A stretch of 64,000 bases of DNA, from positions 62,001 through 126,000 of IMG/VR virus record IMGVR_UViG_3300040801_004034. One strand, given 5' to 3'. The notes under the pieces were generated by a model. That model did no database searches and was not told the origin of the DNA. It saw nothing but the letters and a program-made list of their open reading frames with translations. This document shows positions 2,825-58,758 of the stretch, in pieces (the stretch's first letter is position 1; every line of letters starts with the position of its first letter). The translations under genes and the position numbers were made by a program.

Positions 2825-2881
2825 TTTAATCTTTCTACTTCAATTATAGTATATAGAATAAAGAAAACAATAAATAATTGT

Positions 2882-4123
2882 ATGAACATTGGTTGGAACA
2901 ACAGAGAAATTATTATTCCAAAGAAGCCTCAGCTTCTTGAAGAGAACACACTTATTGAAGAAAGTATTGCAAAGACACTTAAGCCTGTAATGACAAGACT
3001 TAAGAAAATGAACGTCGGTGTACCGTATCGTGATAGTAGATTGTTTTTCTTCCAATTTCTCAAAGACAAACACCCAGATCTTATTCCGCAAGATTGGCCA
3101 CAAACTCGTAAGCCAGCTGCTAAAGACGTTAATGCTATGGTTGGTCAGATTGCGATAGATAATCCTGATAAGTTAGACAAAATCAGCACTGAATTTGAAA
3201 AGTACGCAAAAGAAGATGTTCAAGGAACAGATGGAGATAGAGTTGCTCAATTCCTCAATACTGCAGCATCACTTAGACACGATAAAGGTGTTAGACCAAA
3301 AGCTGGTGAAGGTTTTGTTAAAAAGGATCTTAGCAAACTTAAAGCAAAAGATATTGCAGCAACAACATACGACGCACCTGTAAAACAGAAAAAAGAAACA
3401 GGTAAGGAAGATGATTACAAGGATATCAAAGATGAGAAGCTTATGCTTCGTGCAGCAATTGGTACAGTTCTTCAAAGAATCCGCGGTGATGGTGAAATCA
3501 ACCCAGAAGCAGTTACAAACGTTGAAGATGCAATTAAAAAGATCGACACAGTTGCAGAAATGGAGCGTTTTATTGCATATCTCAAACCAATGGAAGAGTA
3601 TTGGGAAATTGCAAATTATCTTGAAGATGCTCTTGACCCAATTGAAACAAATCTTGGAGATATGGGTACGGAAAATGAAGAAGGTACACCTGCTAACAAC
3701 TTAGCGGATGAAAGAATTGATCCAAGAGAAGGTCTAGATGAACCCGGTGCAGCTACTGATGAAATTCCAGCTCTTGAATACCTTTTAGATAGTCCAGACT
3801 TTCAACAAGTTAAAAACGGTAGAGATCTATTAGAATTTCCGGAATTGTTTGATGCATTGTTCAGTCACTTTCAACATGAAATGCCATATGGTGTTCAAAA
3901 AGCAAGAGATGGTGACCCTGATCAGTGGATTATGAACAAACTTGAAGAAATGGGTGAACTTAACCATAAACCAAGTGAACAAGAATGTGTTCGTCATAAT
4001 GAATCAGTTAAATTATCACCTCAAGCAGTAAATCAACAGCTTCAAGAAGGTTATCGTCAAAGAATGCAAAACAACCGTGTTGTTGACCAACGTTATGCTG
4101 GTACAGGACGTTACATGAGATAA
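2882..4123 (+). CDS. Hypothetical late protein (possible internal head protein)
   Basis: 413-aa ORF preceded by TAAATA-N5-ATG; acidic, with LxE motifs. Confidence 0.6.
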   Translation: MNIGWNNREIIIPKKPQLLEENTLIEESIAKTLKPVMTRLKKMNVGVPYRDSRLFFFQFLKDKHPDLIPQDWPQTRKPAAKDVNAMVGQIAIDNPDKLDKISTEFEKYAKEDVQGTDGDRVAQFLNTAASLRHDKGVRPKAGEGFVKKDLSKLKAKDIAATTYDAPVKQKKETGKEDDYKDIKDEKLMLRAAIGTVLQRIRGDGEINPEAVTNVEDAIKKIDTVAEMERFIAYLKPMEEYWEIANYLEDALDPIETNLGDMGTENEEGTPANNLADERIDPREGLDEPGAATDEIPALEYLLDSPDFQQVKNGRDLLEFPELFDALFSHFQHEMPYGVQKARDGDPDQWIMNKLEEMGELNHKPSEQECVRHNESVKLSPQAVNQQLQEGYRQRMQNNRVVDQRYAGTGRYMR

Positions 4124-4124
4124 T

Positions 4125-4448
4125 ATGATGTTTTCTAAACTTAGTGAGATGGTGGCAGCTGCTGATTTTGATCATTATAAAGATGTTGACGCAGTGGCTG
4201 AACCAGAGCAGGTCAATGACCAACATGAAGAAGACTTATACAAGTCAATTAAAGTTGATCCTGAAAAATTACTCACATACAATAAAACACAAATTGAACT
4301 ATTAAAAAATATTTTTAGTTCGAAAGGTCTCGCACCTCAGGATGTTGAGTTAGCAATGATGAAAGCACTTAGTAGTGCTATAACACAACGAAGAATACGT
4401 TTACATCTTGCTGCTAATAAGCCTGAGTTATTTGATTACGCTGTGTAA
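4125..4448 (+). CDS. Hypothetical protein
   Basis: 107-aa ORF directly downstream of the previous gene. Confidence 0.55.
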   Translation: MMFSKLSEMVAAADFDHYKDVDAVAEPEQVNDQHEEDLYKSIKVDPEKLLTYNKTQIELLKNIFSSKGLAPQDVELAMMKALSSAITQRRIRLHLAANKPELFDYAV

Positions 4449-5107
4449 TCTTGTTTAGATGTTGCTCTCCATATTAATTTCAACCCTTTATATGGATTAT
4501 TTTTCTTAACCCCACCTTTGAGTTTAATATAAGCCGCTGCGTTGCCGAACACTTTCATGCCATCCTCTGTTGTATCAAACCTATATTGTTTACCTTCATA
4601 TTCAAGTATAAATGGACGTAAACGACTTTTGCGTATTTTTAATTTAACATCATCACGCATGAAAGGATTATCTCTTTTCATCCTTTCAGAACGTGCTTTT
4701 GCAACATCTTTTCTATAATTAGGATTAATTGACTTATCTTTCATCCTTTCACTACATTTTTTCCTACGCTCTTCTGACCATATCTCTTCCTTTTGTTCAG
4801 AACTATATGAAAATTTTGCCCCTGTAGTGTCGAAGCCTTCAGTTGCATATGTAAGATTATAAAACATCGGATCTTCTTTAACACGATATTTCTTCTGCCA
4901 ATAGATTTCTTGTTGCTCAAGTTCCGCAGCAGTTTCACAATCTTGTAGTAATACCCGGGTAAAATTAGATGCACCCAATCTATCGATGTCATCCAATAAG
5001 GCCCATGATGATCCTAAATATGTTTCCCAATTTTTTGAATAAGTCTTACGGCCTATGTATTTTTTACCACTTATATTGTTTGTTGTCAAATAAATAAATC
5101 CTATCAT
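4436..5107 (-). CDS. Free-standing GIY-YIG (Seg-like) homing endonuclease
   Basis: GFIYLTTNNISGKKYIGRK...YLGS...FYNL; late promoter TAAATA at 5113-5118. Confidence 0.8.
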   Translation of the reverse strand: MIGFIYLTTNNISGKKYIGRKTYSKNWETYLGSSWALLDDIDRLGASNFTRVLLQDCETAAELEQQEIYWQKKYRVKEDPMFYNLTYATEGFDTTGAKFSYSSEQKEEIWSEERRKKCSERMKDKSINPNYRKDVAKARSERMKRDNPFMRDDVKLKIRKSRLRPFILEYEGKQYRFDTTEDGMKVFGNAAAYIKLKGGVKKNNPYKGLKLIWRATSKQDYTA

Positions 5108-5140
5108 ACAATTATTTATTGGGATAGGTCAGATGAATTT

Positions 5141-6155: not shown

Positions 6156-7230
6156 CTTCGTCTGGTGTTTCATTATGTTCTTTGCTACCGTATTTCCACT
6201 CTACAGCAATACGTTCTTCAATACGTGGTACAATTCGTTCATCCCACAACTTAGTGTTGTTTTTCCAGGTTCCAAAATATCCTAATTTCTCACCATCAAT
6301 TGTATATGTAGCTCCAGATTGTTCAACTACACCTAATCCTTTTGCTAGTGCAAGAAGACCATAATATTTGTCTAAACCACTAGCAAATGACAGATACATT
6401 TCACCTTCAAGATACTGTTGCACAAAACGATTTTTAACAGTAAGTGCTCGTAAGATAACACCCGGGAAGTTCTTTTGACCTGTTGTAAGTTTACCATCTG
6501 TATTATCTTTACCTTCTTTAATCGGTTTACGAGCTAACTGAACTGTAACCGATGGAAGATATACAACTGCTTTACCACCCGGCATCAATTTCTCAAGTGA
6601 TGGAAACATTGCTGATGGGTCTTCATAAACATGGTTTGTTGCAAGAATGGTTGTCTGTGTAAGACCACTCAACTGCACACATGTTCGTAGAAGCGTCTTC
6701 ATTGCTCTAGCACGGCTACCCATATCTGTACTCGTATTGTCTTTCTCCATACGGTTGATCTGGATTTCACTTTCCATATTACCGAGAGAATCAATTGCAA
6801 TAATGAACTTATCAGTCAAACCTTTTTCTTTGGCCACTGTTAAGAACTTATAAATCGCATTTCGACATTCCTCAATCGAAAAGACCGGTACATACTTGAC
6901 TTTTGAAACATCTAAACCAAGAGCTTCAGCACCTTTTCTATCAATTGCATTTTCACTATCAAAAATAACAACTGTATAACCTTCTTTTTGTGCATTAGCA
7001 AGAATACGTTGAACAATGTATGATTTACCAGCCATTGAAGGACCAGCAAATAGTGTCATACGATTTTTGGGTACACCACCAAAAAGAGAACCGGAAATGA
7101 TGCCGTTAAGCACCATTGATCCGGTATCAAACCACCCACCTGTACTACTCAACGTTTCTTCGTCAAGAAACGAAGAGTAGGGGTTAAGTTTGTCTATCTC
7201 ACCTAAAACAGAAGTTATATCTTTATCCAT
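6139..7230 (-). CDS. uvsX: RecA-like recombinase UvsX
   Basis: DTGSMVLNGIISG, Walker A GPSMAGKS, FDSENA, IDSLG, TNHVY, GG and KNRF motifs. Confidence 0.92.
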   Translation of the reverse strand: MDKDITSVLGEIDKLNPYSSFLDEETLSSTGGWFDTGSMVLNGIISGSLFGGVPKNRMTLFAGPSMAGKSYIVQRILANAQKEGYTVVIFDSENAIDRKGAEALGLDVSKVKYVPVFSIEECRNAIYKFLTVAKEKGLTDKFIIAIDSLGNMESEIQINRMEKDNTSTDMGSRARAMKTLLRTCVQLSGLTQTTILATNHVYEDPSAMFPSLEKLMPGGKAVVYLPSVTVQLARKPIKEGKDNTDGKLTTGQKNFPGVILRALTVKNRFVQQYLEGEMYLSFASGLDKYYGLLALAKGLGVVEQSGATYTIDGEKLGYFGTWKNNTKLWDERIVPRIEERIAVEWKYGSKEHNETPDEDEQED

Positions 7231-7237
7231 GTATTAA

Positions 7238-7585
7238 TTATAACACATGATCGGTATCTTTCAATACCTCTACAATCTTTTTAGAAAGATAATTGTTCTT
7301 ATCTTTGTTCTCATCCAAGAACTCACGCCATGTTTGAATAACACTGCGGATCTTTTGGAGCTCTGGATTTGCAACAGGTCCGAGACCTTTATCAGCTCCA
7401 GCAATTGCGTTTTTCAATACATTGATAGCACCTTCAACACCTGCTGCTTGACCACGAGCAAAGGCCGGGTGCTGTCTTGGCGTATCGTCTGTTTCAGGGT
7501 TGTCTAGATATGATCCATGTTTAATATTTGAAAACTTATAGTCATCATTCGGATCAACTTTTGCTTCTTGATATAATTTACTCAT
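7238..7585 (-). CDS. Hypothetical protein
   Basis: 115-aa ORF in the replication operon. Confidence 0.55.
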   Translation of the reverse strand: MSKLYQEAKVDPNDDYKFSNIKHGSYLDNPETDDTPRQHPAFARGQAAGVEGAINVLKNAIAGADKGLGPVANPELQKIRSVIQTWREFLDENKDKNNYLSKKIVEVLKDTDHVL

Positions 7586-7975: not shown

Positions 7976-10570
7976 TCAACCTAGCAACTCAAGTAATGAT
8001 GTTTTAGTTTGGTTATCTGGTTTCTGAATAGGCCAATGAACTGTTTCATAAAAACGTCGTATACACTGAAACAGAACCTTTTCAAACATTATATTATAAT
8101 CGATTTCAATATTATCTTTAAACTCTTTCGGGTAGTCATATTTGAACCCTAAACAATCAATATTGTACCTATTTGGTTTTTGAACATAGAATGTTCTAAC
8201 TTTATCACCTGATTGAATTTTTTCATAATTAGATGCGATATCAAACCTATCAAGTAACAAGTTATGATAGTATGCAGCTTTTGCATGCATCGGCATACCT
8301 TTACATGTCTTAAACCCATCACACTGTTCGATATATTTTTCAAATTGATGAATACCTGAAATCGAAGCAATATCTTTCACATCCATTGCAATCACATCAT
8401 CATATGCTTTCGATAGAACACGATTAGTCTGCTGTATGCTTTGCGTTCTAAGCATTGTTTCAATGATATCCTTTGCATATGGTTTGATTTTAACTGGCAT
8501 TGTTGATCTTACAACTTCAACACCTTTGTATTTGAATTTATCACATGCAATACCTTCATCATCAAGAATACGGAGTACATAACGTTTCTTACCTGTAAAT
8601 ACACCAACACTTGCAATAACTTCACGCTTAAACACAAATGAGCAATTCTTAGAGTTTAGAGCTTTTGCTCCCCATTTTTTAATACCTACATTCAAGTAAT
8701 CTTCAACCTTTTGAATAGCGTCATAACCATCTTGCGTCACATACTGCTTGTTATCTTTTTCATCAATAACTTTAATACCTTGATGGTCAGTTAAAGCTTT
8801 AATCGATGCATATGTACTGTCTGTATCATTATATATTACAGATTTTTCAAGTGCTAATTCATCTACATCAGGTACTTGTTCTTTGATGTAATCTTTTATT
8901 AATTGATTAGCTTGTTTGATAACACCTTGACCTGTTAATGTAATCGACATACCAATATCTCTATCTCCCATTGGTGCATAACTATTTGCAAAGTATCCAT
9001 AGATTGAGTTAATGAAAATCTTAATACACAACTGTTTTGCATCTAGTTGTTCAATTTTATGTTTTACTTTACGTATTTCATCTTTATCAGCACCGGACTT
9101 TTCCATTTCGGCTTTTTTAACACGAAGTTTTTGCATCTCTTTCTTTACAACAACCCGTTTATCGTAATTGTACTGCAAAATCTTTGGCATAAGACCGAGA
9201 TTCTTTTGTGAAAACATAATATTCGCTTTACTGATTCCGACTTCATGTTTTTTAACAAATTTAACGAAATTCTCCGGCGTAAGTTCATGAACTGTCCCGT
9301 TTATGAGTTGTATTTTGATACATTCATCAGTTTTGCTCAATATCTTACCTAGTTTTGTTTCTGGAGACATATTAAGTGAAATCATCACGTTCGGATACAA
9401 ACTATTCGCATCAAAACTGATTACATTTTCATGAAAACCATCTTGAGGTTCACCTACATATGCTCCTGGAATTCTACCTTGTTCATTTCGTTTGAATGTT
9501 GGTATAATTTGACCTTGACGTCTAGCTTGAATTGCAGCACTACCATTAATAACGGAAATTGCACCAAGAGATTGTTCAAATGTGGTTAACCCAGTGTATG
9601 CTAACATTCGAGCCAATCCGAAATAGTTTAATTTCTCTTCTAGGTTGACAAGAAGTCTAACGTCCTGAATGTTGTATTCAACGAACTTTTGCCAGTTAGT
9701 ACGAGCTAACTCACCAATTGAAATATCACCATAATCGATTTTCTTCTGACCTAACTCGAGTTCGCCGATCGTATCAAGTTTGTAGTTTTCTTTTTCTCCA
9801 GGACTGAACTGTTTATAGACTTCAAGGTAGTCAAGTACCGATACACCTCGAATAGTCCATTTTTTAATAGCCATACCCGCATCGGTAATAATATCCCTGC
9901 ATGATATGTCTCTTGATGGAGATAAACGTTCCATCCATTTACGACCTACTATCTTATCCCCTCTAGCAATAAGGTATGGTAAGTCGAAACCATGTAAATT
10001 CCATGCACTTATGATATCAGGGTAGTCCTTCTCAAAATATAATATAAATCGTTGAAATAACTGTTCTTCATTATCACACTGAACATATTTTACATCAGGG
10101 TCGTTATTTTTATATGGTCCAATACCGAATACAGTATGAATGTTTGTAAGTGAATCATGTAGTGTAACAACATTAACAACTTGTTGCGGATCATGTATAT
10201 TTGGGAAACCTGTATCATCTACCTGTGTTTCAATATCGAGAAAAACACATTTGATAGGATGAATTGAGAAATCTTCATCTTCATTATGTTTCCAATATTC
10301 ATCTACTAAAAACTGCTGTACTGGTGGTAAATTCTCAAAGAACCGATTCGTTGATACATCATTTGTATATTTGTACCGTTCATAAGCAGTTCCAAAAGAT
10401 TTTTTGCGTAGTCCAGTTTTAAAAATAGATTGACCTTCACCATCACTATGCTCGATATAAAGATATGGTGAGTAGTGGTGTCTTACAACTGTTCTCTCAC
10501 CATTTTCATCCCATGTATGTACATATACACTTCTTCCTTTGGGATCATAATAAGCATTTCTATAACTCAT
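7976..10570 (-). CDS. gp43: Family B DNA polymerase (gp43-like)
   Basis: ExoI DIET, ExoII WNLHGFDLPY, YNIQD; Pol motifs FDANSLYP, KIFINSIYG, YNDTDS, KKRY. Confidence 0.97.
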   Translation of the reverse strand: MSYRNAYYDPKGRSVYVHTWDENGERTVVRHHYSPYLYIEHSDGEGQSIFKTGLRKKSFGTAYERYKYTNDVSTNRFFENLPPVQQFLVDEYWKHNEDEDFSIHPIKCVFLDIETQVDDTGFPNIHDPQQVVNVVTLHDSLTNIHTVFGIGPYKNNDPDVKYVQCDNEEQLFQRFILYFEKDYPDIISAWNLHGFDLPYLIARGDKIVGRKWMERLSPSRDISCRDIITDAGMAIKKWTIRGVSVLDYLEVYKQFSPGEKENYKLDTIGELELGQKKIDYGDISIGELARTNWQKFVEYNIQDVRLLVNLEEKLNYFGLARMLAYTGLTTFEQSLGAISVINGSAAIQARRQGQIIPTFKRNEQGRIPGAYVGEPQDGFHENVISFDANSLYPNVMISLNMSPETKLGKILSKTDECIKIQLINGTVHELTPENFVKFVKKHEVGISKANIMFSQKNLGLMPKILQYNYDKRVVVKKEMQKLRVKKAEMEKSGADKDEIRKVKHKIEQLDAKQLCIKIFINSIYGYFANSYAPMGDRDIGMSITLTGQGVIKQANQLIKDYIKEQVPDVDELALEKSVIYNDTDSTYASIKALTDHQGIKVIDEKDNKQYVTQDGYDAIQKVEDYLNVGIKKWGAKALNSKNCSFVFKREVIASVGVFTGKKRYVLRILDDEGIACDKFKYKGVEVVRSTMPVKIKPYAKDIIETMLRTQSIQQTNRVLSKAYDDVIAMDVKDIASISGIHQFEKYIEQCDGFKTCKGMPMHAKAAYYHNLLLDRFDIASNYEKIQSGDKVRTFYVQKPNRYNIDCLGFKYDYPKEFKDNIEIDYNIMFEKVLFQCIRRFYETVHWPIQKPDNQTKTSLLELLG

Positions 10571-10600
10571 AGGCTTATTATATATGACAAATACTGTTTA

Positions 10601-11655
10601 TCAATTATACCTAGAAAGATTTTTGCGTAAGTCGCTACCATACCCATATTTGTACATCTCTAAATAACAATCGATATTTCGATCTGTTTCTAACCAACGT
10701 GTTTCAGCATATTGCCGAGCTTTCTTGCTCTGTGATTTATACTGTTTTGTGTTTGATAGCGTTTTTTGTATTTGATCAATCATCTCATCACCGGTCGAAA
10801 ATTTTATAGGTGCATTCTGATATGTACAAAGATCTTGACATGCAATAGGTAAACCAAATGCACTCGATTCAATATATTTCAGATCAGATTTTGATTTGTT
10901 AAATGTGTTATCCATTAATGGTGCAATCATCATATTACAATTCAGATCTTGTATAGTTTGCCCATAATCATAAAACTGAGCCCAAGGGTGAAATTCAATT
11001 TTACCACTTCGAACAAGATCACCTAAAGGTAAAGGATATGCTCCCATAAACACCCACTGATATTTGTCTACTGTCTTACGGATGACATCATTTACATGAT
11101 AAAAATCATCCTTATGCTTTACTCTACTATCAACATCAAAGTGCGCACCACTGCCTGTATATAATATACGAGGTTTTCTTTTGTATTTTTCTAAATTCTG
11201 CATGATCTTACTCTGATCATAGAAATGACCTAACCAGAATTTCGGCATAAAGTTTGGTAGCACTGTGATATTTTTATTACCTGTTTTTTCACTATAATAA
11301 TCTCTCATGAAATCATTTGTTACAGTAATTTCATCACACAGTGCCATAATCTGTTGAGTGGATTCTCTGATCTTCGGATCTGCAAATGCTTCTCTGTATT
11401 TGTTATAACCAGGAATGTCTTCATAGAAACAGATATCATCAATTTCATAAACAATTCTAAAACCGTCTTTATCAGCAACTTGTCTTAAGAACTTAACAAA
11501 TTCAAGCTGTTGCGGTGTTGCTTGTCGTTGTATCCTAACACATTTTGTACTTACATAATAACGCGGGTCAAGATTCATTACAGTGGTAGATTGTACAACA
11601 GCTTTTCTATGACCGTTCATTACCTGCTCTGGCCAAATCATACGCCAGTGACCGC
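10601..11655 (-). CDS. GT-B glycosyltransferase, exon 2
   Basis: After splicing reads ...ADYSG-C-GHWRMIWPE; YEIDD, DEITVT and APL..N.FNKSKSDLKYIE motifs of phage GT4-like enzymes. Confidence 0.85.
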
Positions 11656-12055: not shown

Positions 12056-12928
12056 TTAAGATTTAATACCAAATATAATAAAATCAATATCGTAACCTTG
12101 TTCAATACAAGCATCGTGTTTACAAATATTTTGTTCAAGATGTTTATTCATTGTGTACGTAGATTTAACTTCAATTATCAAATTATCTTTTGGTATAAAA
12201 ATATCAGGAAAGTACTTTTTGTTTTTCGTTTTAAATGTATAATCTATAACAGGTATCAAATTATTATCTGTAACGATGTCATCAACTGTGTATCCGCATT
12301 CAAGAAGAAGTTTTATAGCTTTATCTTCATATCCTTGATATGCAAATGTCTTTCCGTTTATACTGAGTTGTTTTGTTTTAAACGCTGATTTTTGTTGTTT
12401 TGATAAAACTTGAGGTATATGCATCACATTACACACCCCGTATTTTTTCATAACAGCATCCTGATGTTTTTGTTGTATTATAGACCATCCACCATTTTTA
12501 ATAATTGTCTGTCTAGTCAATTCAACAGTTTTTTGTTTAAATAGTTGCTGCTCTTCCCAATTTCTTATATGATTACCATTCTCTGTTAGTACTCTTTGTA
12601 TAACACAAGGGTCGACACTATGCTGATTAGCTATGTAATTTATACCATACCCTTCTGAATATTGTTTAGTCATTCGACCTATTTCATTTTCTGTGAATGA
12701 TTTTTGAATAGTTTCATTACGCTTTTTGTTATACCTACTAAGATTTCTTGATTCAGCAGGAGATCTCAAGCATAGATCATTTTTCAAAATTATATTCTTT
12801 ATAACACTGACATTTACATTGTATTCTCTCGCCAGTTCTGTAACCGAGTACTCATCACAATATTTTACGATAATTTCCGCACTCTTACCGATCAATTTTT
12901 TACTTTCTCATACATTTTCCACGACCAT
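12056..12928 (-). CDS. Free-standing PD-(D/E)xK homing-type endonuclease (start uncertain, possibly disrupted)
   Basis: N-terminal HTH-like repeats, KKYGV repeat, C-terminal YFPDIFIP...IIEVKS; the promoter-linked ATG at 12928 is followed by an in-frame TGA at codon 7, alternative TTG start at 12895. Confidence 0.7.
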
Positions 12929-12954
12929 AATAATATTTATGGGTATAGACAATG

Positions 12955-16275: not shown

Positions 16276-16309
16276 ACATAATTATAGACACACGGATACG
16301 TTAATCAAC

Positions 16310-17725: not shown

Positions 17726-17771
17726 TTTGTTATTTTGTGTTCCATCTGTAATGTTTTTACTAAATATTGTT

Positions 17772-19059: not shown

Positions 19060-19080
19060 AATATAATTGTAAATACTTAC

Positions 19081-40477: not shown

Positions 40478-40493
40478 ATAATTATTTATTAAA

Positions 40494-40697: not shown

Positions 40698-40705
40698 AAC
40701 AATAC

Positions 40706-41407: not shown

Positions 41408-41465
41408 TTGAATTTATTATAACATAAATGTTTGAAAAACCAAATCCGGTTGTTATAATAAGAAT

Positions 41466-42592: not shown

Positions 42593-42638
42593 ACAATTAT
42601 TTATTGGATTCTCAGAATTAACAACATATAATCATGTT

Positions 42639-47291: not shown

Positions 47292-47314
47292 CAATACCAC
47301 ACTTAAATACTACT

Positions 47315-49260: not shown

Positions 49261-49266
49261 CTGTAT

Positions 49267-49722
49267 ATGGCACAAGCAAGTATCGATTCCCTCGCTCCGA
49301 AAAGAAGTTTAATCAATCTAGATGATGAACGGTTAGATGATTTCGGAAATATAGTAACAGATGATTATATTCTGTCATTCATCTTTGATGATATCCTTCT
49401 CGTTAAATTCACTGATGAAGGTGATGATGAAGGTCAAGGAGATGTTGTTGAAAGAGGTGGTATTTTTATACCTGTTAACGCAATGCAACGTGCATGGCGG
49501 AAAGGTGTGGTATTAATGGCTGGACCTGAAGTGAAATACGTTAAAACAGGTCAGATTGTTATTTTTCCAAGCAACTATGGTGTTGGGCTTGGTAATGTCG
49601 AGATTAAAGACTATGGATTCCTTAAGAAAGGTATTTTCTTGAACGAAAGCCGTATATTTGGTATCTGTGATAAGAAGAATGAAGGTAAATCTACAAAGTC
49701 TAAGACAAAAGCTGCAAAATAA
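49267..49722 (+). CDS. GroES-like co-chaperonin (gp31-like)
   Basis: D.LLV, GGIFIP, G.V...GP.V..VK.G..V, LNE..IFG. Confidence 0.8.
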   Translation: MAQASIDSLAPKRSLINLDDERLDDFGNIVTDDYILSFIFDDILLVKFTDEGDDEGQGDVVERGGIFIPVNAMQRAWRKGVVLMAGPEVKYVKTGQIVIFPSNYGVGLGNVEIKDYGFLKKGIFLNESRIFGICDKKNEGKSTKSKTKAAK

Positions 49723-50391: not shown

Positions 50392-50406
50392 ATTATAATC
50401 TAGTCA

Positions 50407-52038
50407 ATGATAAACAAATTACTTAGCTCCTTCCCTGAAGGTTACGAGCCGAACACAGCTCAAACACAGATATTAACACAAATGCATAAAGCATTTGAGG
50501 ATGGTTATAAGTTTGTTATTGTTTCTGCTCCAACTGGCTCAGGAAAAAGCTTCATATCAAAGACATTAGCAAATGCTAGCGATCGCTGCACTGACACATG
50601 GGACAAATTGATTACCAGCTATGATGCTTTCCAGGTTAACCAAATGGGGGAATATACGAACGAAGAAGCCTGCTTAGATGAGCCGCCGCATGGTGCTTTT
50701 GCTTTAACAATTACAAAATCACTTCAGGAGCAATACAAACAACTGTTCGATAGTGCTACATTACTTAAAGGTAAGAGTAATTACCCGTGCGAATTGGATA
50801 ATGAGTTCGATGTAGAAACAGCACCATGTGTTTTTACTACAGGTCTTAAACAAACATGCTGGATGCAGAACAAATGTCTATATTACAATGCAAGAAACAC
50901 TGCTTTAAAAAGTGATTTCACTGCTTTGAACTATAAAATGTTTCTAAGCACACCAAACCATGTTAAACACAGAAATTATATTGTATGTGATGAAGCATCT
51001 GAACTAGAAGGTGAACTTGTAAGCCAATTTTCATGTAATATAACAAGAAGTAAATGGAAAAAAGCTGGGATCAACATACCAAAACTGCTTAGTAAGAAGC
51101 CATCTCAGATCAGACAATGGGTTATGGATATTATCGATGATGTTGAAACAGAACTGAGGAAATTGAAAGATAAGCTTGCGAAAAATCCAAAGCTTATGAC
51201 GCAATCTGAAAAATACAAGTTTCTTGCATTGAGAACATTCAATATGAAGTTGTCGTTAATATACAAAACATGGCCAGACTGTGAATATGTAGCTCAAAAT
51301 GATGATGATGAAATCAAATTAATGCCGCTTAAGATTGATACACTTACAGATACAATTTTTAAGTATGGTGATAAGATTGTTTTAATGTCTGCTACCATTA
51401 TTGATCATAAAAACTTTGCTAAAACACTGGGTATAGACAAATACAAGTATATCGAAGTAGGTAGTGCATTTGATCCTGAAAAATCACCTATTCATATCAA
51501 TACAAAGATAAGGCTCAACTACAAAAACATGCAAACAAGTTTACCTACTGTGATTAAGCAAGTAAAACAACTCTGTGATCATCATAAAGGTGTAAAGGGC
51601 ATCATTCATACACATACATCCTATATTGCTAACCAGATACAACGAGCTGTCGGTAATGACCCGAGGTTTTTGTTTAGAAATGATGAACAAAACAATGAAC
51701 ATATTCTTGAAATGCATGAAAATAGTAGTGAGCCTACTATACTCGTATCACCAAGCTTAGGATATGGTGTTGATCTCAAAGATGATCTTGCAAGATTTCA
51801 AATTATTGTAAAAGCTCCGTATTTACCATTAGGTGATGAACGAATCAAAAAGCTCTTTGAACTAGATAAAAACTGGTACTCAAATGCAATGTTGTGTAAT
51901 GTAGTTCAGCAATGCGGACGAGGAGTTCGTAATAAAAACGATTTCTGTGATACATATATCATGGACGGGTGCATTTATGACGCGATTGTCCGTAATAAAG
52001 ACAAGCTTCCAAAGCATTTTATTGATAGATTTGTTTAA
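50407..52038 (+). CDS. DinG/Rad3-like SF2 helicase
   Basis: APTGSGKS, four Cys (Fe-S), DEAS, MSAT, GVD and QQCGRGVR motifs. Confidence 0.9.
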   Translation: MINKLLSSFPEGYEPNTAQTQILTQMHKAFEDGYKFVIVSAPTGSGKSFISKTLANASDRCTDTWDKLITSYDAFQVNQMGEYTNEEACLDEPPHGAFALTITKSLQEQYKQLFDSATLLKGKSNYPCELDNEFDVETAPCVFTTGLKQTCWMQNKCLYYNARNTALKSDFTALNYKMFLSTPNHVKHRNYIVCDEASELEGELVSQFSCNITRSKWKKAGINIPKLLSKKPSQIRQWVMDIIDDVETELRKLKDKLAKNPKLMTQSEKYKFLALRTFNMKLSLIYKTWPDCEYVAQNDDDEIKLMPLKIDTLTDTIFKYGDKIVLMSATIIDHKNFAKTLGIDKYKYIEVGSAFDPEKSPIHINTKIRLNYKNMQTSLPTVIKQVKQLCDHHKGVKGIIHTHTSYIANQIQRAVGNDPRFLFRNDEQNNEHILEMHENSSEPTILVSPSLGYGVDLKDDLARFQIIVKAPYLPLGDERIKKLFELDKNWYSNAMLCNVVQQCGRGVRNKNDFCDTYIMDGCIYDAIVRNKDKLPKHFIDRFV

Positions 52039-52046
52039 ATATTTAA

Positions 52047-52544
52047 ATGTCACTCTTCAACGAGCAATATAATCAAATAATATCAGAAATTTTTGGTCCA
52101 AATGAAGCATTCCCACTAAATTGGACTGAAAAATCTGATGACTTTTGGGAATGTAATTTTGAAACAAAAAAATCAGGACGATTTGAAGTAACTATTATCA
52201 TGGAACTTCCCGGTAAATGGGAAATTATATTTGCTGCGATGAAATTTCATGGTGAAAATGAATATGGTGAAAATGAATATATACCACAGCTTGATCCAAC
52301 TAATGCAAAGACCGGTGAAGAATTATTGATTTATGGTTCTGTTATAAATGCAGCTAGAGAGTTCATGACACAAATGCAACCACCAATGATATTTTTTACC
52401 AATGATAAAACTACATCACCTAAAAGAACAAAACTCTATCATGCACTTGCAAAAAAAATATCGACAGAATTCCCTAATTATAAACAGCAAGCTACGGGTC
52501 TTAGAAATGGTAAAGATGTGATTGCATTTGTGAAGGTTAATTAA
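52047..52544 (+). CDS. Hypothetical late protein
   Basis: TAAATA-N5-ATG; N-terminus MSLFNEQYNQIISE. Confidence 0.6.
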   Translation: MSLFNEQYNQIISEIFGPNEAFPLNWTEKSDDFWECNFETKKSGRFEVTIIMELPGKWEIIFAAMKFHGENEYGENEYIPQLDPTNAKTGEELLIYGSVINAAREFMTQMQPPMIFFTNDKTTSPKRTKLYHALAKKISTEFPNYKQQATGLRNGKDVIAFVKVN

Positions 52545-52554
52545 GTATTAACAA

Positions 52555-53130
52555 ATGAATTTCGAAAGTTACCACTACATCGACGAAGGTATTAAGGATC
52601 AACTTAAATCCGGTGCTATAACTCTTGCTACAGCTACTGCATTAAATGCAGCTAACTTAGACCCTATTGAATTGTATAATCAGATCGCTGATCATGAAGG
52701 TGTTGTACAACAAGCTTACGTTGATTCAACAGGTCATAAAACGATTGGTATAGGGTTTAACTTGGATGATGCTTCAAATATTAAAAAGCTTGAAAAAATC
52801 GGAGTTTCAGTTGAGGATTTACTTTCTGGTAAACAATTATCTGATAGCGAAATAAAAACATTGTATAATATTTCAATATCTCAAGCATACCGAGATGCAA
52901 AAACATTTTTACCGGATTTAGAGTCTCATCCTTCAGATGTTCAGAAAGCTGTCGTAGATATGTCGTTCAATCTAGGGTTGACTCGATTATTGAAGTTCAA
53001 ACAAGTAAGACAAGCACTTTTTCAACGCAACTATCGTAAAGCTGCAGATGAAATGTTAAATTCATTGTGGGCAAAGCAAACAGGCCGAAGAGCACAAAAG
53101 CTAGCTAATATGGTACGTAATGCTACTTAA
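52555..53130 (+). CDS. T4-type lysozyme (GH24)
   Basis: HEG....YVDSTGHKTIGIG catalytic E-D-T; DMSFNLG, AADEM..S.WA.Q..RA. Confidence 0.92.
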   Translation: MNFESYHYIDEGIKDQLKSGAITLATATALNAANLDPIELYNQIADHEGVVQQAYVDSTGHKTIGIGFNLDDASNIKKLEKIGVSVEDLLSGKQLSDSEIKTLYNISISQAYRDAKTFLPDLESHPSDVQKAVVDMSFNLGLTRLLKFKQVRQALFQRNYRKAADEMLNSLWAKQTGRRAQKLANMVRNAT

Positions 53131-53489
53131 GTAGCTTGATAAAAGGAATGTATATCTTTATCTTCATCGTATAGAACAAAGATATCGTGGTATTTGAAGT
53201 TGTCACCATTCATTTCTACCTGTCTACCAAACTCTGACATACTTCCGAAGATGGTATTAACAAGGTCCTCATCAATGCAGGTACCTATTAGCTCCATTTC
53301 TTCATCACTCGGCAACATAAAATGAGCTGCTTTTGGGTTAGGTGTAAGATTACCAAAGCTTCCTGCTCGTGCAGGTGTTTTAATCATCGTATTGTTTGGT
53401 GAATCATCTTTTGCATTTACTCTACGCTGGATAGCAATAGGTGCATTAAAATCCTCAAGTAGGTCTGTTACTAAAGAGTTGAATTTCAT
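53127..53489 (-). CDS. Hypothetical late protein
   Basis: TAAGTA-N5-ATG; N-terminus MKFNSLVTDLLE. Confidence 0.55.
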   Translation of the reverse strand: MKFNSLVTDLLEDFNAPIAIQRRVNAKDDSPNNTMIKTPARAGSFGNLTPNPKAAHFMLPSDEEMELIGTCIDEDLVNTIFGSMSEFGRQVEMNGDNFKYHDIFVLYDEDKDIHSFYQAT

Positions 53490-53507
53490 ATAAATACTTA
53501 TACAATT

Positions 53508-53870
53508 ATGTTAATGAAAAAAACTCAAAAGCTTCAATGTGTTGTAACAGGTAAAGATAGTATATTCTCAGGAGACTACTTACTTAAAAAAATAAAAGAA
53601 CACGGGAGCTTAGAAAAACTTGAAAAAAATTATATTTGTAAAGATGTAAAATCGTTAATCAAACGAGGCTACAACATTGAACAAATAAGAAACGCTCTTA
53701 ATGTATCTGAAAATGTCGATTACCCTTCTGATGATGTGATCAAAACGATAGAAGAAATGCATAAAACAAATTCGTTTAAGCTCCCTACAATTAACAATAA
53801 TTTGACAGGATTTACACATAATAAATCAGACCCTGAGGTTGATTCTTTCATGAGTTTACTATATAATTAA
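53508..53870 (+). CDS. Hypothetical protein
   Basis: C..TG...YICK pattern. Confidence 0.6.
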   Translation: MLMKKTQKLQCVVTGKDSIFSGDYLLKKIKEHGSLEKLEKNYICKDVKSLIKRGYNIEQIRNALNVSENVDYPSDDVIKTIEEMHKTNSFKLPTINNNLTGFTHNKSDPEVDSFMSLLYN

Positions 53871-54619: not shown

Positions 54620-54693
54620 ACTGTTAACTCTTAATAGTTTATAAAAAGTTTACGCAAAAACGTAGGAAATAAAAATCCAACTTAAATAATATT

Positions 54694-57600
54694 ATGTCAA
54701 TTAAAGCCTTATCAGATTATACAGTATACGCGAAGTATGCAAAATATATTCCAGAACAAAAACGCCGTGAAACATGGAAAGAGCAAGTCGACCGTGTTTT
54801 TGAAATGCATGAGCATAAATACCAGCTACAGTTAGCATCAAATTCAGAGTTCAAAGAGTTATTTTATCAAGCAAAACAAGCTGTGATGAAAAAACAGGTG
54901 CTCGGATCTCAACGAGCATTGCAATTTGGTGGACCGAGTATTGAACGCCATAATGACAAGATGTACAACTGTTTTTCAGGAGATACTAAACTGATAACAT
55001 CAACAGGAGTAATGCAATTTGATGATTACACCCCTGGTGATCAAATTTCAGTTCTAACACATAATGGTCGATGGAAATCAGCTGTTGTAAATCAATATGG
55101 TAAACAGCAACTTTATAAATTAACCTTTAAAAACGGTCAAAATATACATACAGTCAAATGTACACGTGATCATAAATGGATTTTAAAAAATGGTAATGAA
55201 ACTACGAATATCAATATAGGTGATAAAATATTAACATCTAAGACGACATTTACGTTCGATTACGATAATGCAACACCGATTGAAAGGTTATACTGGTGTT
55301 ATGGTTATGTGTTTGGTGATGGAACAACTGTTAAAACAGATAGCGGAACATATTCATCTGCAAGATTATGCGGCGATGATGCAAAATATGAATATAGATT
55401 TACAGAACAAGGATTTAAATCATCATCTTCAGCGTCATTAAATGGTGATGTAATAGTATATACAGGTAAATATGATAAGACAGCACCAGATCCGAAAAGA
55501 GATTCTATCGAATTAATACAAGCATTTACAAGAGGTTATCTTGACGCTGATGGATCAAAAAGTAGTAACGTTAGGAAGGGGGATATGACAAAACCTAACC
55601 CGTTTAATATGATTTCTGCTGAAGATTTCGAACATCAACAGTTTATCGAAACATGTTTTCCTATTGCTGGTGTGTTTATCAAAAAAGTATATGATAAAAC
55701 AGGTACAAAAACAAACTTAGGTACTATCAAAAACGGTAAAACATATTCTATACAAACAACTTTTGACAGAGAAAACAAACATGCAAAGTCATTTAAATTG
55801 ATTGATATAGAAAAATTACACATTGATAATGTGTGGTGTGTAAGTGTTGAAGATGATAAATCATTTACTATGCCAAATGGTATGGTTACCGGTAATTGCG
55901 CAACAACATACATCGATAGACATACCGTCTTCGGTGAGATTATGTATATGTTACTATGCGGTTGTGGTGTCGGGTTCAGTGTTCAGTATAAGCATATTAA
56001 CCAACTACCTAAGATACAAAAACGTAATGGTAATACCGAAAAATTTATTATTGATGACTCAATTGAAGGTTGGGCTGATAGTATCAGTGCATTAGTGAAC
56101 TCATATTTTGTATCAAAAGGTAAATTTAGTGCGTTCAATGGTAAGAAAATCGAATTTGATTACTCGCTTATCAGACCAGAAGGTGCGTTTATATCTGGCG
56201 GCTTTAAAGCACCTGGACCAAACGGTCTTAGAAAAGCTCATGAAAAGATTGCTGCTATTATTGAAAAAAGACTTTCAGAAAACAGTAATAAACTCAAACC
56301 AATTAATGCTTATGATATAATCATGCATACTGCAGATGCTGTCCTTAGTGGTGGTGTTAGAAGAAGTGCAACAGCTTGTGTATTTTCTTATGATGATAAA
56401 GAAATGATCACAGCTAAGACAGGTAATTGGTTCTACGATAACCCTCAACGTGGCCGTAGTAACAACAGTGCTCTTCTCATAAGAAATAAGACAACGTTTG
56501 AACAATTCCAAGAAATAATGATCTCTGTTAAGGAATGTGGTGAGCCAGGCTTTGTTTTTGCTGATAATGAAGATATTGTTTTTAATCCATGCTTTGAAAT
56601 CGGTATGAGACCAAAACTTAACGACGGCAGAAGTGGGGTACAGTACTGTAATCTTACAGAAACAAACGGAAAGAAATGTACTACTAAGGAAGAGTTCTTT
56701 CATGCATCAGAAATGGCAGCTATCCTTGGTACCTTACAAGCAGGCTATACAGATTTCAAGTATCTCGGTGAAGTTACTGAAAAAATTGTAAGACATGAAG
56801 CATTACTCGGTTGTTCTATCACAGGCATGATGGATAACCCTGATATATTGTTCAGTCCTGCAAACCAACGTAAAGCTGCTGAAATTATCAAGGATACTAA
56901 CAGAAAAGTTGCAAAAATGATTGGTATCAACCCTGCAGCAAGAACAACATGCTGTAAACCAGCTGGTACTACGAGTTGTGTACTTGGGACAGCTAGTGGT
57001 ATTCACCCTCACCATGCAAAACGTTATATCCGTCGTGTTCAAGCCAATCGCCTTGAATTTCCACTGAGAAAATTCACAGAAGTTAATCCACTAGCAGTAA
57101 ATGAGTCTGTTTGGAGCGAAAACAAGACAGATATGGTAATTAGCTTCCTTTGCGAGGTGCCAGCCGGTGCTGTAACAAAGAATATGATGTCTGCTTTGGA
57201 TCTTCTTGATAAAGTTAAGACAACACAGCAAAATTGGGTAGAATATGGTACAAATAAAGAGTTATGCATTGATAATACACTAAGGCACAATGTATCAAAC
57301 ACAATAACCGTACAACCAGATGAATGGGACCAAGTAACAAAGTATATTTACAGAAATCGCCAGTGGTTTGCAGCTATTTCATTGCTTCCAGCTAGTGGGG
57401 ATAAAGATTATCCACAAGCACCGTTCACAACAGTGCACACACCTATTGAAATGGCAAAAGAATATGGTGATGCATCTGTTCTTGCATCAGGTGTAATTGT
57501 AGATGGGCTAAAGGCGTTCGATGACTTATGGCCGGCATGTGATGCAGCACTTGGAAAAGGAGCACCACTACCAGAATTGCCAAAAGAGCCGAAATATCCA

Positions 57601-57900
57601 ACAAAACGCGATAATAAAGACCTTGCTCAGTATTTCAATGATAAGGAAGCATATGAAACTATTCTTCTCAAGCATGATTGGGTACGTAGAGCAAGACAAT
57701 TTGCTGATCGATACCTTGATGGCGATGTTCAGAAGATGACTTACTGTTTGAAGGATGTTAATAACTGGAAGACATGGTGTGATCTACGTAGAGAATATAA
57801 GGAAGTTGATTGGTCAACAGTTGTTGAAGATGAACCGTTCTACATTGATATCAATACCACTGCTGCGCAAGCTTGTCAGGGTGGTAAATGTGAATTATAA
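54694..57900 (+). CDS. nrdJ: Class II (AdoCbl-dependent, monomeric RTPR-type) ribonucleotide reductase with intein
   Basis: RRETW, GCGVGF, SGGVRRSA, GEPG, NPCFE thiyl Cys, CNLTE, KPAGT and C-terminal CQGGKC. Confidence 0.93.
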   Translation: MSIKALSDYTVYAKYAKYIPEQKRRETWKEQVDRVFEMHEHKYQLQLASNSEFKELFYQAKQAVMKKQVLGSQRALQFGGPSIERHNDKMYNCFSGDTKLITSTGVMQFDDYTPGDQISVLTHNGRWKSAVVNQYGKQQLYKLTFKNGQNIHTVKCTRDHKWILKNGNETTNINIGDKILTSKTTFTFDYDNATPIERLYWCYGYVFGDGTTVKTDSGTYSSARLCGDDAKYEYRFTEQGFKSSSSASLNGDVIVYTGKYDKTAPDPKRDSIELIQAFTRGYLDADGSKSSNVRKGDMTKPNPFNMISAEDFEHQQFIETCFPIAGVFIKKVYDKTGTKTNLGTIKNGKTYSIQTTFDRENKHAKSFKLIDIEKLHIDNVWCVSVEDDKSFTMPNGMVTGNCATTYIDRHTVFGEIMYMLLCGCGVGFSVQYKHINQLPKIQKRNGNTEKFIIDDSIEGWADSISALVNSYFVSKGKFSAFNGKKIEFDYSLIRPEGAFISGGFKAPGPNGLRKAHEKIAAIIEKRLSENSNKLKPINAYDIIMHTADAVLSGGVRRSATACVFSYDDKEMITAKTGNWFYDNPQRGRSNNSALLIRNKTTFEQFQEIMISVKECGEPGFVFADNEDIVFNPCFEIGMRPKLNDGRSGVQYCNLTETNGKKCTTKEEFFHASEMAAILGTLQAGYTDFKYLGEVTEKIVRHEALLGCSITGMMDNPDILFSPANQRKAAEIIKDTNRKVAKMIGINPAARTTCCKPAGTTSCVLGTASGIHPHHAKRYIRRVQANRLEFPLRKFTEVNPLAVNESVWSENKTDMVISFLCEVPAGAVTKNMMSALDLLDKVKTTQQNWVEYGTNKELCIDNTLRHNVSNTITVQPDEWDQVTKYIYRNRQWFAAISLLPASGDKDYPQAPFTTVHTPIEMAKEYGDASVLASGVIVDGLKAFDDLWPACDAALGKGAPLPELPKEPKYPTKRDNKDLAQYFNDKEAYETILLKHDWVRRARQFADRYLDGDVQKMTYCLKDVNNWKTWCDLRREYKEVDWSTVVEDEPFYIDINTTAAQACQGGKCEL
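54970..55896 (+). mobile_element. Intein with LAGLIDADG endonuclease (309 aa)
   Basis: YN|CFSGDT start, T.DHKW block B, GYVFGDG and RGYLDADG motifs, ends VTGN|C. Confidence 0.93.
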
Positions 57901-57923
57901 ACGGAACATCTATAATATTCAGT

Positions 57924-58484
57924 ATGAAATATGCTAATTTATACACCGCTAAAGGTGATACTGGTATGACCGACCTTTGGTCTGGTGGAAGAGTATTGAA
58001 AAATCATTTCCGTATTAAAGCGGTTGGTAAAATTGATACATTCCATGCAACTCTTGGTCTTTGTCATCAATATGAGCCTTCTTCGGATCATTATACAATA
58101 CTCAAAGAGTTTTTACATAAAGTACAGACAGATCTTACCAAAATTATGGGTGTAATTGCTAGTGAAACTATCAAAGATGGTTTTGTTGTTGAGTTTGATG
58201 TGATGAATCAGTTTTTATATAAACACATTGTTAAATATGCTGAATGGCTTGATGATCAATCAATAAAACAACAGGGTTGGAAGATGTATGGTGAAGGAGG
58301 AGCAGCCGCTGCTCAGTATGATTACACAACCACTATTTGCCGTGAAGTTGAGATCATGATTTATGATCTGGAAAATGTTTACGGAATGACTATCAGTGAT
58401 GGAATGAAACAGTATTTCAATATGTTGAGTAAAGTCCTATATCTCATTGCACGCATATATGAACATCAGGATGATATTAAATAA
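57924..58484 (+). CDS. pduO: PduO-type cob(I)alamin adenosyltransferase
   Basis: YTAKGDTGMT.L..G.RV.K...RI.A.G.ID; CREVE; YFN.LS..LY..AR. Confidence 0.88.
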   Translation: MKYANLYTAKGDTGMTDLWSGGRVLKNHFRIKAVGKIDTFHATLGLCHQYEPSSDHYTILKEFLHKVQTDLTKIMGVIASETIKDGFVVEFDVMNQFLYKHIVKYAEWLDDQSIKQQGWKMYGEGGAAAAQYDYTTTICREVEIMIYDLENVYGMTISDGMKQYFNMLSKVLYLIARIYEHQDDIK

Positions 58485-58488
58485 TATT

Positions 58489-58758
58489 ATGGGTAATGAT
58501 GATTGTTTAATTTTTGAAGCGTATAAAGGTTCTGATTTGATTACAGAGCAGTATAATGAATGGTGGGATGCAAAGATGCAAATTGATGAACTCAAACCCG
58601 GGTATTATATTGGGTATCAATCAGGTAGTGTTATCAAAATAAATGAAAAAGAATATAAAGCAGGTGATACCGTCCGTGGAATGAATTTTCCATTCGTTTT
58701 GAGAGTTCAACGAAATGGAAAAGTATTTAAGCATTATATCCCGAATGAACGTGGTTGA
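58489..58758 (+). CDS. Hypothetical late protein
   Basis: TAAATA-N5-ATG; N-terminus MGNDDCLIFEAY. Confidence 0.5.
   Translation: MGNDDCLIFEAYKGSDLITEQYNEWWDAKMQIDELKPGYYIGYQSGSVIKINEKEYKAGDTVRGMNFPFVLRVQRNGKVFKHYIPNERG

Follow-up and report, generated by a model that had tools for sequence, protein, structure and literature searches.

Why do so many genes of an uncultured T4-like phage start at the same short distance from a promoter-like box, and do their messages carry a leader at all? In a window of 64,000 nucleotides (positions 62,001 to 126,000 of IMG/VR record IMGVR_UViG_3300040801_004034, a 221-kb genome with 35.5% GC), the first-pass annotation listed 18 gene starts preceded by TAAATA-N5-ATG and three preceded by TAAGTA-N5-ATG, found that no Shine-Dalgarno (SD) fits in the gap, and inferred a leaderless late translation programme that differs from T4 and hints at the translation style of the host. 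We found that the observation holds and is stronger than first described. As proposed in that annotation, motif-to-start spacing was compared with shuffled sequence. TAAATA-N5-ATG occurs 20 times in the window (2.96 ± 1.70 expected), and none of 100 shuffles reached 20. All 18 listed sites exist, whereas the two additional matches (24967-24980 on the minus strand and 33911-33924 on the plus strand) lie inside genes and are not gene starts. Seventeen of the 18 ATGs open ORFs of 36-1068 aa, mostly as the first ATG after the upstream stop; the exception is the 12928 site. In the whole genome, the motif occurs 47 times at N5, nearly always at the first ATG of an ORF, against about 6 per other spacing and 8.7 ± 3.0 in Markov simulations. 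The TAAGTA variant is not significant in the window on its own (4 versus 1.22 expected; 7 of 100 shuffles reach 4); however, the three listed sites all start ORFs of 67-174 aa, and TAAGTA at gap 5 is 59-fold enriched at gene starts genome-wide. The features of the window are listed in Table 1.

Table 1. Promoter boxes and associated genes in the 64,000-nt window (N, nucleotides between box and ATG).
Position	Strand	Box	Gene or remark
1..10	+	TAAGTA-N5-ATG (box starts just before the window)	ORF 8-823, 271 aa
2871..2884	+	late box TAAATA-N5-ATG	ORF 2882-4123, 413 aa, unknown
5105..5118	-	late box N5	GIY-YIG homing endonuclease 4436-5107
7228..7264	-	sigma70-type promoter TTGAAA-16-TATAAT-N6-ATG	UvsX-like recombinase
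10568..10604	-	sigma70-type promoter TTGATA-16-TATAAT-N6-ATG	DNA polymerase gp43
12926..12939	-	late box N5	6-codon ORF, in frame with the downstream DUF7487 ORF (12056-12895) but cut from it by one TGA
15787..16275	-		gp55-type late sigma factor gene (162 aa), itself behind a sigma70-type box (TATAAT 16281-16286, N5)
16273..16308	-	sigma70-type promoter TTGATT-16-TATAAT-N5-ATG	gp55 gene
17725..17847	-	best sigma70 promoter 94 nt upstream of the ATG	exception: uvsW; a mini-ORF ends in ATGA on the uvsW start
17761..17774	+	late box N5	homing endonuclease 17772-18680
19030..19045	-	late box N7	ORF 18664-19032
19070..19083	+	late box N5	ORF 19081-19491
21210..21223	+	late box N5	ORF 21221-21847
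25878..25891	-	late box N5	ORF 25497-25880
26835..26848	+	late box N5	ORF 26846-27604
33977..33990	+	late box N5	ORF 33988-34281
34508..34521	+	late box N5	ORF 34519-34932
35967..35981	-	TATAAT-N6-ATG	FolE2 (GTP cyclohydrolase)
36013..36026	+	late box N5	ORF 36024-36551
39832..39845	-	late box N5	ORF 39463-39834
40475..40488	-	late box N5	36-aa ORF
40695..40708	-	TAAGTA-N5-ATG	67-aa ORF with a hydrophobic N-terminus
41405..41468	.	divergent pair of TATAAT boxes (N8 minus, N6 plus)	58-nt gap
42590..42603	-	late box N5	ORF 42281-42592
47304..47317	+	late box N5	ORF 47315-47833
49254..49269	+	late box N7	ORF 49267-49722
50394..50409	+	TATAAT-N7-ATG	DEAD_2/Helicase_C_2 helicase
52036..52049	+	late box N5	ORF 52047-52544
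52542..52557	+	TAAGTA N7	ORF 52555-53130
53487..53510	.	overlapping divergent late boxes: TAAGTA-N5 (minus gene, ATG 53489) and TAAATA-N11 (plus gene, ATG 53508)	18-nt intergenic gap
54683..54696	+	late box N5	intein-bearing ribonucleotide reductase 54694-57900
57902..57926	+	class A promoter GGAAC-N3-TATAAT-N7-ATG	ORF 57924-58484
58478..58491	+	late box N5	ORF 58489-58758
62137..62155	+	late box N10	ORF 62153-62752
63829..63842	+	TAAGTA-N5-ATG	ORF 63840 onward (174 aa)

Could the pattern be a product of chance in AT-rich DNA, or of the choice of start codons? Our refined gene starts preferred motif-bearing ATGs; however, the raw spacing histograms and shuffles do not depend on gene calls, and a gene caller restricted to the first ATG still gives TAAATA at gap 5 in 37 genes and TATAAT at gap 6 in 44. 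In the cultured Pelagibacter phage HTVC008M, moreover, the sites fall on independently annotated starts. This explanation is already refuted by the shuffles.

What, then, are the boxes? The phage is a distant T4 relative and encodes a gp55-type late sigma factor, which was identified by tblastn with T4 gp55 (42% identity over the region-2-like core), by a match to phrog_234 “late sigma transcription factor” (E 1.2e-22) and by BLASTP (1e-12). The hexamer is invariant apart from A/G at one position, and shares with the T4 late promoter TATAAATA the TAAATA core, the absence of a -35 element and an AT-rich segment downstream. Position -12 is A/T and the first two T4 positions, -13 and -12, are relaxed; no conservation was found upstream of -13, as in T4, and no information upstream of -14. 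The box precedes 10 of 11 identified structural genes and 0 of 8 replication genes (p = 1.2e-4), in addition to homing endonuclease genes and a tail fibre gene; as in T4, it stands before structural and homing-endonuclease genes on either strand. The designation “late” nevertheless rests on analogy, as some box-bearing genes are metabolic, such as ribonucleotide reductase. With regard to the remaining T4 late machinery, the clamp loader gp44 is present, whereas the clamp gp45 was not detected with PF09116, PF02916 or transitive tblastn, and the co-activator gp33 was not detected either, although without a query sequence for it.

The distance from box to gene start bears on where transcription would begin. 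TAAATA lies 5-12 nt before 71 gene starts and never 13-20 nt before one; counting TAAGTA as well gives 79 sites. The spacing is thus not always exactly 5, as the first-pass annotation had it, since 34 further late boxes sit at N6-N12. In T4 the box occupies -13 to -6, so that the sixth base after it is +1. Here that base is the A of the start codon in 45 genes and lies 1-7 nt upstream of it in 34 more. In the N6-N12 class the sixth base after the box is A in 25 of 31 cases, compared to 66 of 217 for boxes elsewhere (p = 1.2e-7), so the A tracks the box and not the ATG. A position weight matrix scan put the predicted +1 within 0-7 nt of a start for 72 of 111 high-scoring sites, and off-target sites were fewer than chance. 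In addition, TAAATA is depleted inside genes on both strands (92 versus 130 ± 8 sense; 86 versus 117 ± 7.5 antisense), although about 180 copies persist there, indicating that the hexamer alone is not sufficient. In the T4 control, by contrast, the box sits 14-28 nt from the ATG, leaving a leader with a Shine-Dalgarno.

Is the arrangement specific to late genes? Further analysis showed that the scope of the first-pass annotation was too narrow, because sigma70-type boxes are fused to ATGs in the same way (TATAAT-N6-ATG, 59 copies; 44 genes), either with a -35 TTGA (class B) or with a new GGAAC box (class A). TATAAT peaks at N6 and TAAATA at N5, each of which is the known box-to-+1 distance of its sigma type. 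Twelve of 17 class B sites have TTGA at a 16-17 nt spacer, in agreement with a canonical sigma70 promoter, and an independent scanner placed its three best promoters, with 10-11 of 12 matches, 5-6 nt before the gp43, UvsX and gp55 ATGs. Promoters, late and early alike, abut the start codons of about 150 genes. The same boxes abut tRNA-His and a suppressor tRNA, and 39 of 48 heads of divergent units carry an abutting box, some in gaps of 18-28 nt. A Bacteroidota-type promoter (TTTG / TAnnTTTG) is not supported, with 302 copies compared to 345 in the reversed-sequence control and only 16 near gene starts. It is true that no Shine-Dalgarno fits in the gap, but this is not special to these genes: SD-like words occur before 0% of motif genes, 6.3% of other genes and 4.3% of random windows. 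No gene class uses Shine-Dalgarno, and its absence is therefore no argument about the gap. Genes without a promoter are tightly coupled to the upstream gene, with a median gap of 1 nt. Predicted 5' structure does not separate promoter-abutting starts from operon-internal starts.

An alternative is that the motif acts on the RNA, as a non-SD ribosome-binding or enhancer element, or as the operator of a translational repressor such as T4 RegA. The 5-12 nt spacing indeed resembles SD spacing, the sequence between box and ATG is itself conserved (T at -4 in 88%, T at -1 in 79%), and T4 RegA operators are AU-rich and overlap start codons. However, RegA of T4, HTVC008M and S-PM2 gave no hit better than E 0.5, although RegA is about 50% identical among those three. 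Two different boxes, each with its own sigma-specific spacing, and class B with a -35 TTGA 16-17 nt upstream, cannot be read as RNA signals; the antisense depletion, the boxes before tRNA genes, the association with a temporal gene class and the encoded gp55 also argue against it. We consider this alternative very unlikely. It is likewise very unlikely that the pattern is mostly a mobile cassette, in which homing endonuclease genes would have spread a compact promoter-plus-ATG module around the genome. At least 7 box-bearing genes are GIY-YIG or HNH endonucleases, and several share near-identical box-to-ATG strings; yet most of the 79 box-bearing genes are not endonucleases, and conserved structural genes carry the box with different flanks and spacings and keep it in relatives at about 50-60% protein identity.

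Taken together, the interpretation of the first-pass annotation is partly supported: its core reading, gp55-type late promoters whose geometry puts +1 on or next to the AUG, unlike T4, holds up, but it is not a late-specific programme. We propose, as the likely explanation, that the TAAATA (rarely TAAGTA) boxes are the -10-type late promoters of a T4-like phage, read by host RNA polymerase carrying the phage gp55-type sigma factor, and that the late mRNAs are leaderless or nearly so, with leaders of 0-7 nt. They would be translated by direct binding of the ribosome and initiator tRNA to a 5'-terminal AUG, without Shine-Dalgarno pairing. In this view the late boxes are one face of a genome-wide design, in which sigma70-type promoters (TTGAnn-16/17-TATAAT, or GGAAC-N5-TATAAT) are fused to ATGs at N6, again their canonical +1, and genes without their own promoter overlap or abut the gene upstream and would be translated by coupling, so that most messages probably begin at the AUG. 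The motif, its spacing, its association with gene class, its conservation in relatives and the presence of gp55 were established by this analysis, whereas the actual transcription start, the primary 5' end at the start codon, the timing of each class and the leaderless translation mechanism are inferred, as the sequence was found only in DNA runs from one microbial-mat study. Leaderless initiation is not the only mode: the major capsid gene has no box of its own and sits behind a 99-nt gap, and uvsW seems leadered.

It is also possible, though unlikely, that the promoters are real but leaderless mRNAs are a minor product, with most protein coming from long read-through polycistronic transcripts and the boxes lying next to ATGs only because intergenic space is minimal. 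The classes are interleaved gene by gene on one strand and few terminator-like sites were found (6 versus 7.8 expected in 20 kb), so read-through is likely; moreover, operon-internal genes are clearly translated without SD, and the capsid gene lacks a box. Nevertheless, compaction alone does not explain an exact N5 or N6 mode that matches the +1 of each sigma type, the complete absence of boxes at N13-N20, or a T4 genome of similar density keeping N = 14-28. Genes at the head of divergent units, in gaps of 18-60 nt, have no other place for a promoter. A more speculative and rather doubtful possibility, not excluded by the data, is that this phage clade runs an expression system without Shine-Dalgarno, in which a cistron is translated only if it is at the 5' end of its mRNA or tightly coupled to the gene upstream. 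Promoter choice would then gate translation directly, and read-through copies of a late gene on early transcripts would stay silent, which would replace RegA-type control. The phage might also disable SD-dependent host translation to favour its own messages, and the GGAAC box, 5 nt upstream of TATAAT, would be the site of a new phage-directed promoter-recognition factor.

How far does the arrangement extend beyond this genome? A -10 element 5-7 nt upstream of an AUG start without SD, as found here, is a sequence hallmark of leaderless bacterial mRNA. Such a -10 motif adjacent to ORFs occurs in Deinococcus-Thermus and Actinobacteria; that arrangement is cellular, however, and leadered genes there still use GGAG, whereas in this phage no class uses SD. 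In the Thermus phages phiYS40 and Lalka27a, the A or G of the initiator codon is the 5' end of most transcripts in a phage-wide programme with class-specific -10 elements (bioRxiv 10.64898/2026.04.20.719267). Those phages are unrelated, and their hosts are thermophiles of a phylum where leaderless genes are common (39%; PMC3160421), whereas the present phage is T4-like, has a mesophile-like proteome and uses a gp55 sigma. The arrangement has not been described for the T4-like family. T4 is the textbook model for timed phage gene expression; this lineage keeps the gp55 late sigma but has collapsed every promoter class onto the start codon and dropped the Shine-Dalgarno, and apparently RegA as well, a different answer to the same regulatory problem. 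It defines a promoter-plus-start unit of about 14 bp and gives gene callers an exact start-codon signal for such phages.

Comparison with other genomes showed that two clade relatives share the layout, with promoter class concordant between orthologs (p = 5e-5) and spacing that drifts, whereas T4 and six other T4-like phages do not. HTVC008M, a T4-like pelagimyophage whose gp55 is 34% identical, has the late version, with TAAATA-N5-ATG on the GenBank-annotated starts of gp4, gp48, gp25, gp29 and gp2. However, it uses strong SDs for 46% of its genes, including other late genes, which weakens the inference from this layout to the translation style of the host, and its early promoters are not fused to ATGs. 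HTVC008M would also show whether a host that uses SD, such as SAR11, translates leaderless phage messages efficiently. Late-promoter prediction was reported to have failed in pelagimyophages (PMC7029224), which the arrangement would explain. In addition, phages related to HTVC008M (Melnitz and relatives) carry tmRNA genes (PMC9004378), and the present phage has one too.

The 221,292-bp contig (35.5% GC), of which the window covers bases 62001-126000, comes from a microbial-mat metagenome and is rated complete by CheckV. It encodes T4-type core proteins, including a family B DNA polymerase, a UvsX-like recombinase, gp46/gp47, a UvsW-like helicase and an intein-bearing ribonucleotide reductase, in addition to gp23, gp20, gp18, gp19, gp21, gp17, gp13, gp6, gp25 and gp4, which are found elsewhere in the genome. 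A search of the phage collection revealed no near-identical phage. The polymerase and portal share only 29-35% identity with those of any catalogued phage, the best hits being cyanophages, the pelagiphage HTVC008M and vibriophages. It is thus a distant, uncultured T4-like phage.

Motif counting showed that TAAATA-N5-ATG occurs 20 times in the window against 2.96 expected, and no shuffled sequence reaches 20. In the whole genome, the spacing histogram has one sharp peak, with 47 occurrences at N5 against about 6 at other spacings and 8.7 +/- 3.0 in simulations. Of 48 in-frame cases, 42 are the first ATG of their ORF. The observation made in the first-pass annotation held, as 17 of its 18 TAAATA sites and all three TAAGTA sites open real ORFs. 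The exception is the site at 12928, where the ATG opens a 6-codon ORF that is in frame with a DUF7487 gene but separated from it by one TGA. The alternative start of this gene would be a rare TTG, and the arrangement could represent a mini-ORF, a decaying gene or an assembly error. Further analysis revealed a longer motif than first described, with G at -14, A at -13, A/T at -12, TAAATA, A/T at -5, T at -4 and T at -1.

Several features indicate that the box is a late promoter. A gp55-type sigma factor is encoded next to gp47 (window 15787-16275, minus strand). In T4, the late TATA box occupies -13 to -6 and nothing is conserved at -35 (PMC2988020), and the same holds here. The TAAATA box lies 5-11 nt before 10 of 11 identified structural genes, but before none of 8 replication genes (p = 1.2e-4). 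It also precedes a tail fibre gene and several GIY-YIG or HNH homing endonucleases; however, it also stands before the ribonucleotide reductase gene, which is unexpected for a gene of nucleotide metabolism. Genome-wide, the box ends 5-12 nt before 71 starts (79 when TAAGTA is counted) and never 13-20 nt before one. Searches with Pfam profiles and by transitive tblastn detected neither the clamp gp45 nor gp62 by sequence.

By the T4 geometry, +1 is the sixth base after the box, which in the 45 N5 genes is the A of the ATG. In the 31 TAAATA sites at N6-N12, this base is still A in 25 cases, compared to 30% for boxes elsewhere (p = 1.2e-7), and it is usually preceded by a pyrimidine. The A thus follows the box and not the ATG, as a start site would. 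The predicted leaders are 0 nt (45 genes), 1 nt (8), 2 nt (12) and 3-7 nt (14). By contrast, TATAAATA in T4 itself lies 14-28 nt from annotated starts, with a mode of 27-28. The motif, its spacing, its association with gene classes, its conservation in relatives and the presence of a gp55-type gene are read from the sequence, whereas the transcription starts, the timing and the translation mechanism are inferred from geometry, conservation and analogy with T4, as a search of sequencing runs returned only DNA runs from a single microbial-mat study. The 5' structure did not discriminate between promoter-abutting and operon-internal starts, which are equally unstructured.

The interpretation of the first-pass annotation, a leaderless programme of late mRNAs, is only partly supported, because the pattern is not confined to late genes. 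An unbiased hexamer-by-offset scan revealed two more signals, TATAAT at gap 6 (44 starts, 120-fold) and GGAAC at gap 16-17 (up to 480-fold), which resolve into two classes. Class B is a canonical sigma70 promoter, with TTGAnn, a 16-17 nt spacer, TATAAT, N6 and ATG, and stands before gp43, gp55, UvsX, gp44 and metabolic genes; an independent promoter scanner puts its best hits exactly there. Class A is GGAAC-N5-TATAAT-N6-ATG without a -35 element, with 36 exact copies against 0 expected, mostly before small ORFs at 162-221 kb. In this new promoter-like class, the GGAAC box, at about -22 to -18, matches no promoter element known to us and may be read by a phage factor. N6 is the canonical distance from a sigma70 -10 box to +1, and N5 is the T4 late distance. 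The two promoter types therefore point independently at the same +1, the A of the ATG. In total, 154 of 346 genes have a start-abutting promoter. Of the other 192 genes, 183 follow a same-strand gene with a median gap of 1 nt, including 24 ATGA overlaps, so they look translationally coupled. Moreover, 39 of 48 heads of divergent units carry a box, some in gaps of 18-28 nt. SD-like words are at background level in every class.

We also considered whether the boxes might act as RNA signals, but several results favour a promoter at the DNA level. These are the -35 element of class B, the sigma-specific spacings, the depletion of TAAATA inside genes on both strands, the presence of the same boxes abutting tRNA-His and a suppressor tRNA, and the absence of any RegA homolog in the Pfam and transitive tblastn searches, although RegA is about 50% identical among T4, HTVC008M and S-PM2. 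In addition, a PWM that leaves out the TG of the ATG places 72 of its 111 hits within 0-7 nt of a start, and off-target hits are fewer than chance. There are exceptions to this layout. The major capsid gene has no abutting box and follows a 99-nt A-rich gap after the putative scaffold gene; it is probably co-transcribed with the gene upstream, so the most abundant late protein would be made by internal initiation. The uvsW gene seems to have a leader of about 88 nt; its best sigma70 promoter lies inside the divergent homing-endonuclease gene, 94 nt upstream, and a coupled 7-codon mini-ORF ends in ATGA on the uvsW start codon.

Comparison with relatives showed that 12 IMG/VR contigs with portals 62-64% identical keep TAAATA just before the portal ATG, at N9 rather than N6. 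A 93-kb relative has 24 N5 sites against 0 in the control, plus TATAAT at gap 6 and no SD, and a 34.5-kb relative is similar. The promoter class is concordant between orthologs (late p = 5e-5, TATAAT p = 6e-5), whereas the spacing drifts, as for gp21 with N6, N5 and N10. Selection therefore keeps the box close to the ATG. The cultured Pelagibacter phage HTVC008M has TAAATA at gap 5 before 12 called starts (98-fold). These fall on GenBank-annotated starts of gp4 (18943), gp48 (19456), gp25 (31132), gp29 (16007, minus strand) and gp2 (18916, minus strand), and also of the CsgF gene, with TAAATAGTA..ATG as the common form; however, 46% of its genes use strong SDs and its early promoters are not fused to ATGs. 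No excess was found in T4, S-PM2, P-SSM4, RM378, VH7D, C48C1 and AG-345-E15. Mostly leaderless transcripts are known for the Thermus phages phiYS40 and Lalka27a, and a -10 box adjacent to ORFs is known in Deinococcus-Thermus, whereas our literature search found nothing linking T4-type late promoters to leaderless mRNAs. One study reports that late-promoter prediction failed in pelagimyophages, and another listed TATAAAT sites in a related phage without comment on leaders.

The first-pass annotation had further suggested that the layout hints at the translation style of the host. HTVC008M shows that the late arrangement can coexist with SD use, so the layout is not a simple read-out of host translation. 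A Bacteroidota host, prompted by the lack of SD, found no support, as there is no TAnnTTTG or TTTG promoter signal and no phage bS21. Similarly, no WhiB was found that would suggest an actinobacterial host. A thermophilic host (Thermus or Aquificae) was disfavoured by the IVYWREL fraction of 0.375 against 0.376 for T4, which makes the proteome look mesophilic. A search for phage-encoded IF3 returned none, and the epimerase, examined as a possible host-derived gene of cellular type, has no bacterial relative above 34% identity.

Coordinates of individual features in the window, in the whole genome and in HTVC008M
Sequence	Position (strand)	Feature
Window	57902-57926	Class A promoter-like element (example)
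Genome	162-221 kb (-); 135-148 kb (+)	Class A promoter-like elements
Window, continuing in genome	63549-63797 (window), on to 125.5-143.2 kb (genome)	tRNA block with tmRNA and suppressor tRNA
Window	2156-2824 (-); 5141-5935 (-); 34941-35969 (-); 38189-38947 (+)	Glutamine amidotransferase, QueC, FolE2 and a 4Fe-4S (QueE-like) protein
Window	22170-33972 (+) and 25885-26787 (-); 44945-46537 (+)	Sugar-nucleotide and glycosylation cluster
Window	54694-57900 (+)	Ribonucleotide reductase (1068 aa) with intein-like insert
Genome	21311-23625 (-) and 38653-41562 (-)	Split clamp loader gp44 and large terminase gp17
Window	12908-12939 (-)	Late box with N5-ATG and 6-codon ORF at the DUF7487 gene
Window	17725-17847 (-)	uvsW upstream region
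Genome	149846-151441 (-)	Major capsid gene
HTVC008M, NC_020484	6280, 7562, 11972, 16007 (-), 18916 (-), 18943, 19456, 31132	TAAATA-N5-ATG on annotated starts of late structural genes and of the CsgF gene

The tRNA block consists of about 39 tRNA genes plus a one-piece tmRNA (tag GENQLMAA) and the suppressor tRNA, which has a CUA anticodon. Most of these tRNAs are directly preceded by TTTAT, TATAT or TATAAT. The suppressor tRNA raised the possibility of stop-codon recoding; nevertheless, TAG is a normal stop that ends 58 of 346 genes, so there is no sign of recoding, and table 11 was used throughout. The clamp loader gp44 and the large terminase gp17 are each split into two ORFs, and in gp44 an endonuclease gene with its own late box lies between the halves. 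The glutamine amidotransferase, QueC, FolE2 and the QueE-like protein together look like a 7-deazaguanine pathway, so the DNA may carry a modified guanine. In addition, the sugar-nucleotide and glycosylation cluster comprises epimerases/dehydratases, a DegT aminotransferase, a PIG-L deacetylase, a cytidylyltransferase, several glycosyltransferases and a radical SAM/SPASM enzyme.
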